Below are positions 3,664-33,752 of a stretch of DNA of 64,000 nt, in pieces. How positions within the stretch are numbered: position 1 is the stretch's first letter; every line of letters begins with the position of its first letter. A program made the translations under genes and the position numbers. Source of the stretch: Phaeosaccion multiseriatum (lineage: Eukaryota > Protista > Ochrophyta, other classes); the NCBI GenBank assembly GCA_965112735.1, contig OZ218961.1:1426001-1490000 (forward strand). The letters are read 5' to 3'. A model generated the notes under the pieces. That model was given only the letters and a program-made list of their open reading frames with translations. It was not told the DNA's origin and made no database searches.

Positions 3664-6600
3664 TCACCGCGCGGAGTGATGTGGCATGGTCACCCTCCTG
3701 CTGTTAGTGAAACTTCCCCTCCCCCTCCTGCTGCCACCCAACCTGTGGCCGCCCAGCCTGCTGCTGCTGCTGCCGCCGCCGCTGGTGTCAGGGCTGCCCC
3801 TATGCCCACCTCTCCCACTCCTGTCCACCGCTGCCACTGCTGTTGGTGCTTCGCTGCGGAGGCGGTGCTGTTGCAGCAGAAAGTGGTCATTCTGAGCAGT
3901 CGACAGCGCAAGGTTTCCGATGTTACAGGCGGTGGGCAACCCCAGCCGCTGTCCCGCCCTGCGTGGCTCATGATCGAGGCGAGATCCTGACACGCGGTAG
4001 CGGAGTATCTCATTCCGCCCGGCCGTAGAGGTCCGAGAGCGAGAGGGACTCCGAGTGGGGGTGTGGGACAAGCCAGCGCCCCTCTCTTCGTCTATATACA
4101 GTTGTATATGTATACATATATGTATGTGTGTGTGTGTTGCGTTTGAAGTTGTGAATCATTCGGGAATTGGACGGGAGAGAGGAAGGAGAGGAGAGCAGAG
4201 CAGAGCAGAGAGCGAGTGAGTGAGTGAGTGAGGGAGTGAGTAAGTGAGTGAGTGAGTGAATCAGGAAGTGTGTGAGTGAGTGAGTGAGTGAGTGAGTGAG
4301 TGAGTGAGTGAGTGAGTAAGTGAGTGAGTGAGTGAGTGAGTGAGTGAGTGAGTGAGTGAGTGAGTGAGTGAGTGAGTGAGTGAGTGAATCAGTAAGTGTG
4401 TGAGTGAGTGAGTGAGTGAGTGAGTGAATCAGTAAGTGTGTGAGTAAGTGAGTGAGTGAGTGAGTGAGTGAGTGAGTGAGTGAGTGAGTGAGTGAGCGAG
4501 TGAGTGAGTGAGTGAGTGAGTGAGCTGATGGGACTCTGCGGCAGGGGCAGTGGCAGGGTAATCCTCTTGTTTCCGAGACGGGAAGTAAGCACATCAGCGT
4601 GAGCACATAAGCGGTGCTTCTGAAAGGGGTCCTGACACCTGCCACTGCACTGTTGGGGGCAGTCCCGGTCTTCAAGCCCCGCGGGGATAAAGGAGGGGCA
4701 TCTTTAGAGCGCCATCACTACTCACCGAATATGTCAGTGAGGGTAAAGGACGGAGGGACAGCGCCGCTCTTGGGGAAGGCAGCCTGGGAGGGAGGGAGGG
4801 AGGGAAGGAGGGAGGGAGGGACGGTGGGAGGAGGTGGGTGATGAGAGAGTGAGTGAGTGAGTGAGTGAGCGAGTGAGTGAGCGACTGAGTGAGTGAGTGC
4901 ATGCGTGAGTGAGTGAGTGAGTGAGTGAGTCAGTGAGTGAGTGAGTCAGTGAGGGAGTGCGTGCGTGAGTGAGGAGTGAGTGAGTGAGTGAGTCAGTGAG
5001 GGAGTGCGTGCGTGCGTGAGTGAGTGAGTGAGTGAGTGAGTGAGGAGTGAGTGAGTGAGTGAGTGAGTGAGCGAGTGAGTGAGTGAGTGACTGAGTGACT
5101 GAGTGACTGAGTGAGTGAGTGAGTCAGTGAGTGAGTGAGTGAGTGAGTGAGTGAGTGAGTGAGTGAGTGAGTGAGTGAGTGAGTGAGTGAGTCAGTGAGT
5201 CAGTGAGTCAGTGAGTGAGTGAGTGAGTGAGTGAGTGAGTGAGTGAGTGAGTGAGTGAGTGAGTGAGTGAGTGAGTGAGTGAGTCAGTGAGTCAGTGAGT
5301 GAGTGAGTGGGTGAGTGAGTGAGTGAGTGAGTGAGTGAGTGAGTGAGTGAGTGAGTGAGTGAGTGAGTGAGTGAGTGAGTGAGTGAGTGAGTGAGTGAGT
5401 GAGTGAGTGAGTGAGTGAGTGAGTGAGTGAGTGAGTGAGTGAGTGAGTGAGTGAGTGAGTGAGTCAGTGAGTCAGTGAGTGAGTGAGTGAGTGAGTGAGT
5501 GAGTGAGTCAGTGAGTGAGTGAGTGAGTGAGTGAGTGAGTGGTGAGTCAGTGAGTCAGTGAGTGAGTGAGTGAGTGAGTGAGTGAGTGAGTGAGTGAGTG
5601 AGTGAGTGAGTGAGTGAGTGAGTCAGTGAGTCAGTGAGTGAGTGAGTGAGTGAGTGAGTGAGTGAGTGAGTGAGTGAGTGAGTGAGTGAGTGAGTGAGTG
5701 AGTGAGTGAGTGAGTGAGTGAGTGAGTGAGTGAGTGGGTGAGTGAGTGAGTGAGTCAGTGAGTGAGTGAGTGAGTGAGTGAGTGAGTGAGTGAGTGAGTG
5801 AGTCAGTGAGTGAGTGAGCGAGTGAGTGAGTGAGTGAGTGAGTGAGTGAGTGACTGAGTGAGTGAGTGAGTCAGTGAGTGAGTGAGTGAGTGAGTGAGTG
5901 AGTGAGTGAGTGAGTGAGTCAGTGAGTGAGTGAGTCAGTGAGTCAGTGAGTGAGTGAGTGAGTGAGTGAGTGAGTGAGTGAGTGAGTGAGTGAGTGAGTC
6001 AGTGAGTGAGTGAGTGAGTGAGTGAGTGAGTGAGTGAGTGAGTGAGTGAGTGAGTGAGTGAGTGAGTGAGTGAGTGAGTGGGTGAGTGAGTGAGTGAGTG
6101 AGTGAGTGAGTGAGTGAGTGAGTGAGTGAGTGAGTCCCCTCCACCAAGCGTCATCACCCCTCCCCTCCCCTCACCTTTTCTTCCTCTAACCCCATCTTTT
6201 CCAGCAGTTTAGTGAAGGGCCCGTCCCCGCCCCACCCCCTTCCTTCCCCCTCTCCTCCTCCCACAGTATCAGTACCGCCCATGGCATCGCGGAACGATCG
6301 CGGAAAGTTCTGCCGAATATCCTTCCGTAAGCGCTTCTTATCCCTGGCGAGGCCCCTATCTCTAGGGTGCTCCTCACAGCGGCGGCAGAGCTCTCGGTAC
6401 TGGTGACACCTGGTACTCAACGGACAGAGAGGAGGTCAGAGTGTCAGGACAGAGGGTGTACGGACAGAGGGTGTCAGGACAGAAGAAAAACGGAGAGAGA
6501 GACTGTGTGTGTGTCCGGATAGAGAGAGGGTCAGGACGGAGGGAGTGTCAGGACAGGAAGAAAGAGTGTGTGTGTGTGAGAGAGAGAGAGAGACTGTGAG

Positions 6601-33600: not shown

Positions 33601-33752
33601 TTCCGCTTCTTCTCCGTCTCCGGCAAGCCTCCGGCCGAAAGGGACGAGAAGCGGAGCTGCTGATGCTTCTGAGGAGGAGGAGAAGACCCATGGTCTCGGC
33701 CCTCAGTGTTGGTCGCAGCAGAGCTGGCCTTGAGCTTGCTGAGCAGACCCAT
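3664..33752 (-). CDS. Giant multi-C2-domain protein (~17 C2-like domains) with C-terminal EF-hands and SAM domain; ~40 exons, roughly 5,000 aa
   Basis: ATG at 33752 (MGLLSKLK). Repeated C2 signatures (KQDPYV/KQDPFV, VEVWN..D.LIG, G.L.V.V..A..L) in exons from 33.7 kb to 12.8 kb. EF-loops [12 protein letters not shown] (~12.75 kb), [22 protein letters not shown] (~11.57 kb), [22 protein letters not shown] (~7.52 kb), [12 protein letters not shown] (~6.76 kb). [26 protein letters not shown]...L..ELGV....HR.KL (10240-10445). GT-AG junctions checked are phase-compatible (31488/31009; ~4725/4091). Last exon 4091-3664. Could be two adjacent genes. Confidence 0.75.
4213..6135. repeat. (GAGT)n microsatellite arrays (4213-4523 and 4848-6135) in the last introns of the C2 gene
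   Basis: Directly visible tetranucleotide arrays with GAGC/CAGT variants. Confidence 0.97.
11632..11878. repeat. (GGGA)n/(GGAA)n intronic microsatellite
   Basis: Directly visible; abuts the 3' splice site at ~11616. Confidence 0.95.
14583..14960. repeat. GGCATATGGGCA 12-bp minisatellite with 72-bp higher-order repeat
   Basis: ATGAGCATGCATAAAGG recurs at 14653, 14725, 14797 and 14869 (72-bp period = 6 x 12). Confidence 0.9.
15388..15687. repeat. (GGGGA)n pentanucleotide intronic array
   Basis: Directly visible. Confidence 0.93.
19336..19715. repeat. 55-bp CA-rich intronic minisatellite, ~6 copies
   Basis: AAGAAACGCACTCAATC at 19341, 19396, 19451, 19506, 19561 and ~19658. Confidence 0.92.
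20111..20411. repeat. 20-bp minisatellite (GAGCAGAGGCATATGGGTCA)n, ~15 copies
   Basis: Directly visible tandem array; contains the GGCATATGGG word. Confidence 0.95.
22688..23160. repeat. (CTGC)n intronic microsatellite
   Basis: Directly visible. Confidence 0.95.
25073..26386. repeat. ~1.3 kb perfect (GGGA)n array in an intron of the C2 gene
   Basis: Uninterrupted tetranucleotide array; generates the spurious REGG/PPSL ORFs. Confidence 0.97.
27417..27605. repeat. (CCAA)n intronic microsatellite
   Basis: Directly visible. Confidence 0.93.
31196..31457. repeat. (GACT)n intronic microsatellite
   Basis: Directly visible, in the first intron of the C2 gene. Confidence 0.93.

Follow-up and report, generated by a model that had tools for sequence, protein, structure and literature searches.

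Positions 3664-33752 of the minus strand in a 64,000-nucleotide stretch of the Phaeosaccion multiseriatum genome (GenBank assembly GCA_965112735.1, contig OZ218961.1, positions 1,426,001 to 1,490,000; the whole stretch is referred to below as the window) probably contain a single intact, intron-rich gene, whose product is an anchor-less protein of about 4,700 residues that combines a C2 array with EF-hands and a SAM domain and probably acts as a peripheral multivalent scaffold or tether. The N-terminal four fifths of this protein are organized as beads on a string, with 16 and possibly 17 C2 beta-sandwiches connected by low-complexity linkers. The C-terminal fifth contains, in this order, an EF-hand pair, a SAM domain, a charged helix, two conserved blocks, a motif of about 50 residues running into an EF-like loop, and another EF-hand pair. 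Among the known members of a small, uncharacterized eukaryotic family with a C2 array, SAM domain and EF-hands, it is the largest. A full-text literature search did not find a protein with such a combination described, and to our knowledge no described C2 protein has an EF-hand/SAM tail.

Homologues were identified with several types of searches, for which, as for structure prediction, single exons or open reading frames (ORFs) of the orthologue were used, while the joined spliced model served for profile, hhalign and hydropathy analyses. A full HMMER scan of 1.84 billion representative sequences with window positions 27625-29166 (minus strand) gave 34 matches at E<=1e-3, the best of which has an E-value of 6e-23 and 33% identity; none of the 34 is a studied protein and hence no characterized orthologue is among them. 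The orthologue used throughout is located on a 36-kb Joint Genome Institute metagenome contig (Ga0617939_0000173, locus L005), where an uninterrupted ORF of 2,716 residues (P0013) is adjoined by same-strand ORFs of 1,092, 218 and 344 residues, with gaps of 60-80 nt. Additional family members are P0010 (2,182 residues, NCBI RYH30865.1), P0012 (2,307 residues), P0033 (2,903 residues) and P0053 (3,058 residues), the last of which is encoded as a single ORF on contig VFQN01002976.1 (locus L008). Scanning metagenomes with the C-terminal motif (alignment A3) revealed three more loci, one of them encoding P0053 and another with an uninterrupted stretch alignable over about 800 residues to the tail of the window protein. 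A word-index homologue search with P0013 returned only P0013 itself, with the tail region adding P0053, and an Atlas search with the C-terminal 1,567 residues of P0013 gave no score >=0.9 and was not used. Up to now, about seven relatives with the C2-array/SAM/EF layout have been found, none of them characterized, and their source labels are automatic ones such as 'hypothetical protein' or 'Ca2+-binding EF-hand superfamily protein'. Outside this genome the family was found only in metagenome-derived sequences, and the searched protein databases thus hold no member from a named organism. P0010 (seven C2 stretches, a SAM domain and an EF-hand) has been assigned to an 'archaeon' metagenome-assembled genome; as its domains are typical of eukaryotes, its contig is probably eukaryotic and wrongly binned.

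The window protein contains the array of KQDP[YF]-type C2 domains and the order SAM, C-terminal motif of about 50 residues, EF-hands (alignments A2 and A3, colinear tblastn matches), and P0013, P0010, P0012, P0033 and P0053 likewise have the same C2-subtype array, SAM domain, motif and EF-hand pairs, with no transmembrane segment. Along its entire length, the P0013 locus is colinear with the window, and the two have one intron position in common. Members differ in size, since the window protein has about 4,700 residues and 16-17 C2 domains and the P0013 gene encodes about 4,370 residues, whereas proteins of a second clade have 2,180-3,060 residues with 2-7 Pfam-detected C2 stretches each. They differ further in the EF-hand pair ahead of the SAM domain, which is found only in the window/P0013 clade, and in introns, about 40 in the window gene versus three or none in the relatives.

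Using the Pfam C2 model (PF00168, cut-off 22 bits), two stretches were recognized in each of the ORFs 31359-33878 (52.2 bits, 7.6e-14) and 27541-29298 (33.4 bits, 5.5e-8), and a match just below the cut-off in ORF 15693-17390 (19.8 bits, 9e-4). A family-specific hidden Markov model (HMM), iterated from the three repeats of exon 1 over all retrieved homologues and comprising 368 domain instances, gave partial matches on six-frame pieces that chain along the locus in register, and on the spliced model it gave E-values of 4e-31 to 1e-11 for ten modules (1-7, 9, 11 and 16). Using hhalign, window and orthologue pairs, or the orthologue alone, were compared with the C2 family, with five non-C2 control segments giving P values of 0.12-0.71. 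The gene and the modules of its array are as follows.

3664-33752, minus strand: whole gene; about 33-44 exons and about 4,500-4,750 residues in our own approximate models; colinear with orthologue ORFs o1-o4.
31488-33752, minus strand: exon 1, one open frame with a short leader, C2-1, a poly-Gln run, C2-2 and C2-3.
33240-33668, 32394-32834 and 31578-32045, minus strand: C2-1, C2-2 and C2-3; family HMM E 4e-31, 9e-31 and 2e-22, respectively.
29958-30901, minus strand: C2-4 on three exons (about 30919-30834, 30632-30377 and 30173-29766); family HMM 2.8e-23.
28807-29849, minus strand: C2-5 on three exons; family HMM 3.2e-16.
28168-28629, minus strand: C2-6, whole in one exon; family HMM 1.4e-27, Pfam C2 5.5e-8 for its ORF.
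27173-28002, minus strand: C2-7, with a tetranucleotide-repeat intron inside; family HMM 1e-16, second Pfam C2 stretch of ORF 27541-29298.
26573-27025, minus strand: C2-8, divergent; hhalign P 5.8e-4 for the pair and 1.3e-4 for the orthologue alone.
23540-24731, minus strand: C2-9 on three exons, D-x-D of loop 3 kept; family HMM 1.2e-11.
22042-23272, minus strand: C2-10, divergent; hhalign P 1.6e-3 for the pair, orthologue alone unsupported.
20456-21638, minus strand: C2-11 on three exons, D-x-D of loop 3 kept; family HMM 8.5e-16, exon-wise tblastn to orthologue residues 851-988.
18572-19024, minus strand: C2-12, divergent; hhalign P 4e-3 for the pair, orthologue alone unsupported.
17546-18454, minus strand: C2-13; hhalign probability 98%, P 3e-13; orthologue counterpart family HMM 4e-21.
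16911-17470, minus strand: C2-14; hhalign probability 87.6%, Pfam C2 9e-4.
15789-16562, minus strand: C2-15, divergent; hhalign P 2.9e-3 for the pair and 2.7e-5 for the orthologue alone, nearly the full profile being covered.
14028-15365, minus strand: C2-16 on four exons; family HMM 1.6e-13, hhalign probability 97.3%.
12800-13856, minus strand: possible C2-17 with long low-complexity inserts; strand and motif pattern by eye only.

Twelve of these modules are strongly supported, two moderately (8 and 15), two weakly but with corroboration (10 and 12), and one by its motif pattern only (17). Judged from these profile comparisons, 16 C2 domains appear defensible and about 17 a fair count. The original prediction, made from the letters of the window, had proposed about 17 tandem C2 domains, and this number is borne out for 16 of them, well beyond just a few, with statistical support lacking for the 17th. 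C2-1 and C2-2, with a long poly-Gln run between them, are a recent internal tandem duplicate, as a direct repeat of 300 nt with 97% identity and a spacing of 825 nt connects 32510-32809 and 33335-33634. The AlphaFold model of C2-6 (predicted local distance difference test score, pLDDT, 84.7; predicted template modelling score 0.83) has the eight-stranded beta-sandwich fold, with a Foldseek probability of 1.0 to many solved C2 domains; its top matches are Itch C2, Trypanosoma brucei E-Syt C2B, dysferlin C2A and cPLA2 C2, with plant SYT1 C2A also among the matches.

Concerning the divergent modules, C2-8 matches orthologue residues 338-497 by tblastn (6e-20). The orthologue counterpart of C2-10 (P0013:650-850) is predicted to adopt a C2 fold (pLDDT 80.4), and its top Foldseek matches are C2 domains, the same structures as those matched by C2-6. 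For the orthologue counterpart of C2-12, C2 families make up 25 of the 30 nearest named Atlas clusters (score 0.92), in a language-model search of lead-level value. A probable small exon at 19694-19990 (minus strand) was skipped by the final exon model, and the first strand of C2-12 is probably encoded by this exon. Candidate C2-17 matches orthologue residues 2050-2178 by tblastn (2e-17), and hhalign gives it no C2 support (P 0.14-0.33). Orthologue segments 17a, 17b, 10 and 12 taken alone gave hhalign P values of 0.12-0.33, like the controls. In the orthologue (locus L005, P0013 residues about 1790-1925), 17a is a seeming extra C2-like module between 16 and 17, which was not placed in the window and has no hhalign support.

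One of the structural features of this family is the composition of the putative calcium-binding loops. Among the 368 family domains, the loop-1 Asp of the KQDP[YF] motif is present in 273 and hence nearly invariant, and the residue seven positions upstream of it is acidic in most (231 Glu, 43 Asp). At the first position of loop 3, Asp is found in 182 and Asn in 105 domains; at the second, which corresponds to the second aspartate, Asn predominates (274 domains) and Asp is rare (15 domains). In the window and the orthologue the loop-3 pair is mostly N-x-N, and from the module alignment D-x-D together with acidic loop-1 residues can be read only in modules 9 and 11. By their sequence, these C2 domains form a distinct subtype with KQDP[YF] in loop 1 and [DN]-x-N in loop 3. 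In synaptotagmin, such Asp-to-Asn changes abolish calcium binding. We infer that the array may be mostly calcium-independent or of low affinity, which makes the calcium-sensing C2 array of the original prediction doubtful. Since most C2 modules do not contain a full acidic cage, calcium control is likelier to operate via the three canonical EF loops of the tail.

The tail is encoded by a series of smaller exons, listed below.

12711-12788, minus strand: EF-hand loop 1 with canonical ligand pattern, at the end of a long exon; EF-hand_5 3.9e-5, EF-hand_6 6.3e-5.
12100-12243, minus strand: probable small exon, EF-like loop without the position-12 acid, absent from the last model; by eye like orthologue residues about 2178-2244.
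11433-11615, minus strand: exon with a canonical EF-hand loop pairing with loop 1; EF-hand_1 1e-3, tblastn to orthologue residues 2244-2286.
10248-10448, minus strand: SAM domain; SAM_2 2.2e-13, SAM_1 6.7e-10, 55% identity to the orthologue, aligned with five homologues.
9746-10099, minus strand: Glu/Arg/Lys-rich exon after the SAM domain, a charged helix or coiled-coil-like stretch judged from the translation; a similar stretch is at the same place in homologues.
9313-9603, minus strand: exon with two conserved family blocks past the SAM domain; alignment A2, tblastn to orthologue residues 2552-2617.
8474-8674, minus strand: signature C-terminal motif of about 50 residues leading directly into an EF-like loop; alignment A3.
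7500-7548, minus strand: mini-exon with a canonical EF-hand loop, the exiting helix being on exon 7092-7019; 68% identity to a canonical EF-hand of the orthologue.
6687-6803, minus strand: exon with the partner EF-like loop, Arg instead of Gly at position 6; tblastn to o4 residues 133-183, EF-hand_1 0.08.
6178-6375, minus strand: conserved C-terminal block; tblastn to o4 residues 173-229, 2e-4.
3664-4048, minus strand: terminal exon with the stop codon (3664-3666); tblastn to o4 residues 258-306 (2e-7) at 4023-3871, with the frame open to the stop.

Thus, six or seven EF-like loops are found on separate small exons, each below the Pfam threshold, of which three are canonical by inspection (12711-12788, 11433-11615 and 7500-7548) and three or four degenerate. 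Their orthologue counterparts form two Pfam-significant EF-hand_7 pairs, one (7e-10) corresponding to loop 1 and the other (6e-11) to mini-exon 7500-7548. A third EF pair is composed of a pseudo-loop in the signature motif and a degenerate loop. Pfam gave no match on the EF-like loop at 12100-12243. The signature motif has 22 invariant columns across five proteins, with a mean column identity of 73%, and its exon, which bridges the o3/o4 intron of the orthologue, is 67% identical to the orthologue by tblastn. In the 67-Mb genome it is single-copy, with one match (6e-29). Together with the intron position shared with the orthologue, the invariant columns and single copy of the motif speak for functional constraint on the gene. 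An extra splice at 3838/3781 in our own model was rejected as unsupported. About six EF-hands, the SAM domain and the layout C2 array, EF-hands, SAM, coiled coil and EF-hands had all been proposed from the window's letters, and they were recovered in that order, the post-SAM stretch being a charged helix or coiled-coil-like.

The absence of a membrane anchor was examined with a Kyte-Doolittle scan in 19-residue windows, and by this simple hydropathy test no transmembrane-like segment is present in the model, the orthologue, P0010, P0012, P0033 or P0053. The highest 19-residue mean of the model (1.96) is located on a doubtful mini-exon joined to a C2 beta-strand, and all homologues remain at <=1.67. 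No Pfam match to SMP, FerA/FerB, DysF or PRT_C domains was obtained, either in 20 pieces of the window (E<=1) or in the scanned homologues (E<=0.01). Both statements of the original prediction, that neither a transmembrane helix nor an SMP/Fer domain is visible, are thus upheld by these tests. N-myristoylation was considered as an alternative anchor, as the protein starts with Met-Gly, and it was rejected on motif grounds only, residue 6 being Lys and the orthologue start being different.

These features separate the window protein from known multi-C2 families. Ferlins (dysferlin, otoferlin and myoferlin) likewise carry many C2 domains in one chain, and the C2-6 model resembles dysferlin C2A (Foldseek TM-score 0.76-0.80 normalized to target). 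However, ferlins have 5-7 C2 domains, FerA/FerB/DysF, a C-terminal transmembrane anchor and no EF-hands or SAM domain, and no hydrophobic 19-mer corresponding to such an anchor was found by hydropathy in the tail of the window protein. E-Syts/tricalbins and MCTPs likewise contain tandem C2 domains of similar fold, with T. brucei E-Syt C2B and plant SYT1 C2A among the best structural matches, but E-Syts combine 3-5 C2 domains with an SMP domain and a membrane hairpin, and MCTPs combine 3-5 C2 domains with C-terminal transmembrane helices. Of the E-Syt features, neither an SMP match (Pfam) nor a transmembrane-like segment was detected, and the window protein begins about 30 residues before C2-1; of the MCTP C-terminal transmembrane region, neither a PRT_C match nor a hydrophobic segment was detected. 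Because the defining non-C2 parts of these families are absent, the window protein, as predicted from its sequence, is no ferlin, E-Syt, MCTP or synaptotagmin. The fold of C2-6 matches cPLA2-type (topology II) C2 domains, and the D-x-N loop 3 of the family recalls the D93-A94-N95 calcium ligands of cPLA2. The window protein differs from cPLA2 in that most of its modules have N-x-N, the loop-1 acid is displaced and there is no catalytic domain.

In the proposed mode of action, the C2 beads would make many weak, additive contacts with membranes or partner proteins, which would render the protein a peripheral multivalent scaffold or tether. Calcium input would enter via the three canonical EF loops of the tail, and the SAM domain with the charged helix would serve self-association or partner binding. 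A complex prediction with two copies of the window SAM domain scored 0.00, which gives no verdict for or against binding. Roles in membrane repair, tethering or flagella are pure inference. Several points weigh against this interpretation. The lack of an anchor is derived from a hydropathy scan and not from a dedicated transmembrane or lipidation predictor; homology and our own model are the basis for the exon borders, the small exons and the unity of the gene in this genome. Modules 10 and 12 are weak, with P values of only about 1e-3, and statistical support is lacking for module 17. For module 10, the fold prediction used the orthologue sequence and an alignment of C2 domains, which biases the model towards C2. 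Furthermore, the cPLA2 C2 domain binds calcium through a D-x-N loop, and for this reason the loss of calcium binding by the array is not proven.

A possible but rather unlikely alternative is that the same gene encodes a calcium-independent structural part of the cytoskeleton, basal body or flagellum, with C2 domains serving as protein-protein or microtubule modules, as in CEP120, C2CD3 and RPGRIP1L. The incomplete acidic cage of most modules would fit such a function. In the Atlas search, orthologue module 12 came closest to the cluster of the RPGRIP1 C-terminal C2-like domain, and the Foldseek matches include C2 structures of CEP120 and of the ciliary tip; ancient ciliary C2 domains do not bind calcium, as noted by Zhang and Aravind (PMC3495828). 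However, sequence comparisons revealed no connection with any family of ciliary C2 domains, structural similarity is highest with the lipid-binding C2 domains of Itch, E-Syt, dysferlin and cPLA2, and the presence of three canonical EF loops favours at least some calcium control.

It is less likely still that the protein represents a new giant anchor-less C2-array family whose calcium sensing was transferred from the C2 loops to an EF/SAM tail working as a STIM-like SAM self-assembly switch. STIM1 has an EF-hand pair and a SAM domain in one tail, as does the window protein, and the orthologue scores 26.8 bits with the STIM1 EF-hand model PF25578, short of the 32.2 bits required. A STIM-type switch of this kind is attractive as a variant but unsupported beyond this sub-threshold match. 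In STIM, the EF pair abuts the SAM domain in a transmembrane protein and is luminal in the endoplasmic reticulum, whereas here a spacer of about 130 residues separates them and neither a signal peptide nor a transmembrane segment is present. If true, calcium bound by the EF pair beside the SAM domain would switch on SAM assembly and thereby convert a soluble chain of 16-17 weakly membrane-binding beads into a polymeric tether or patch, for example in wound repair or the holding of cortical organelles.

That the span is one gene in this genome is very likely, as judged from the predicted exons and their homology. An exon-chaining program of our own, using codon log-odds, trained splice matrices, homology hints and masking of repeats with a period that is not a multiple of three, could split the span into several genes at a penalty, and each of three runs gave one gene (44 exons/4,540 residues, 33 exons/4,522 residues and 39 exons/4,753 residues). 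These models are approximate, and the last one lacks at least two small exons (about 19.7-19.99 kb and about 12243-12100). The first in-frame ATG is at 33752, inside an 840-codon open frame (31359-33878), and the last frame supported by homology is closed by the stop at 3664-3666; both agree exactly with the limits originally proposed. The proposal of a single giant gene of about 40 exons likewise agrees with our models (33-44 exons, colinear with the orthologue); of its estimated length of about 5,000 residues, the giant size stands and the figure is reduced to 4,520-4,750.

Orthologue ORFs o1-o4 are colinear with the window by tblastn from 33662 down to 3871. The three gaps between them are GT..AG introns, each cutting a domain (two C2 domains and one EF pair), and the orthologue is therefore regarded as one gene. 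Splicing of the o3/o4 gap yields a sequence contiguous in window exon 9019-8474, and the o1/o2 intron is at the same codon as window intron 30377/30173. The single uninterrupted ORF P0013 joins the C2 array, EF-hands, SAM domain and C-terminal motif, and the C2 array, SAM domain and EF-hands are also in one ORF in P0010, P0012, P0033 and P0053. An arrangement of two or more neighbouring genes, such as one for the C2 array and one for EF-hands and SAM, with a fused orthologue making them look like one, is very unlikely. Two of the introns are longer than 1.5 kb (26547 to about 24733 and about 6158 to 4048) and our exon model misses some exons, but the pieces are without exception colinear, on the same strand and chainable in frame, the putative borders cut through several C2 domains and EF pairs, a parse permitting several genes picked one, and the whole layout is present in one ORF in five or more relatives. 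That the locus is a decaying or non-expressed relic overrun by microsatellites is hardly credible, since, despite introns full of tetranucleotide repeats of up to 1.3 kb and low-complexity linkers, no homology-supported exon requires a frame-breaking stop and the SAM and C-terminal blocks are 55-68% identical to the orthologue.

The region from 3.6 to 33.8 kb, in a window with a guanine-plus-cytosine content of about 0.53-0.70, consists of many minus-strand stop-free stretches with tetranucleotide microsatellites between them. Introns whose sites were read are canonical, for example CAG|GTGAGT ... TAG|G. They are packed with long tetranucleotide microsatellites (up to about 334 copies or 1.3 kb; 25059-26396, 4838-6135, 22687-23159, 10975-11308, 31196-31457 and others), which are open in all three frames and hence mimic long ORFs. 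On plus-strand ORFs within the span, Pfam gives low-complexity noise only. The gene is flanked by a TRMU/MnmA-like tRNA-modifying enzyme at 1-1923 (plus strand) and ABCF2 at 39071-40642 (minus strand). The ABCF2 product shares no more than 76% identity with any database protein, its best named matches being ochrophyte and red-algal proteins, which fits a stramenopile-like alga.

A 17-nt motif occurs at 19 window sites on both strands with <=2 mismatches, versus 0.02 expected, for example at 29884-29942 (three copies), 28106-28122, 27066-27133, 31024-31040, 35816-35832 and 57686-57702. Its copies are located within and beyond the gene, in introns and in apparent coding linkers, where they are read in differing frames. 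A dispersed element, mobile or related to introns, is one possible explanation, and if copies in linkers are spliced out, the protein would be slightly shorter. Elsewhere in the genome, contig C6 (3499700-3517200, plus strand, loci L001-L004) carries another giant gene with at least 12 Pfam C2 matches and open frames of up to 1,722 codons, whose translations contain peptide stretches resembling the linker peptides of the 17-nt motif; it was rejected as a paralogue, being a different gene with canonical D-x-D C2 domains and no close relative. On the same contig as the window, about 39 kb past its end (C12:1528861-1529100, plus strand), a Pfam C2 match (2e-9) is in a 667-codon open frame.

None of the domains is unusual in itself, and the finding represents a solid annotation lead rather than a mechanistic surprise. 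In ferlins, E-Syts, MCTPs and synaptotagmins, the arrays end at about 3-7 C2 domains and are membrane-anchored, whereas in this family up to 16-17 C2 domains are found without an anchor. The KQDP[YF] / [DN]-x-N subtype is well suited to examine how far a C2 domain depends on its acidic cage, and the genome of P. multiseriatum gives a family known only from metagenomes an organismal home.

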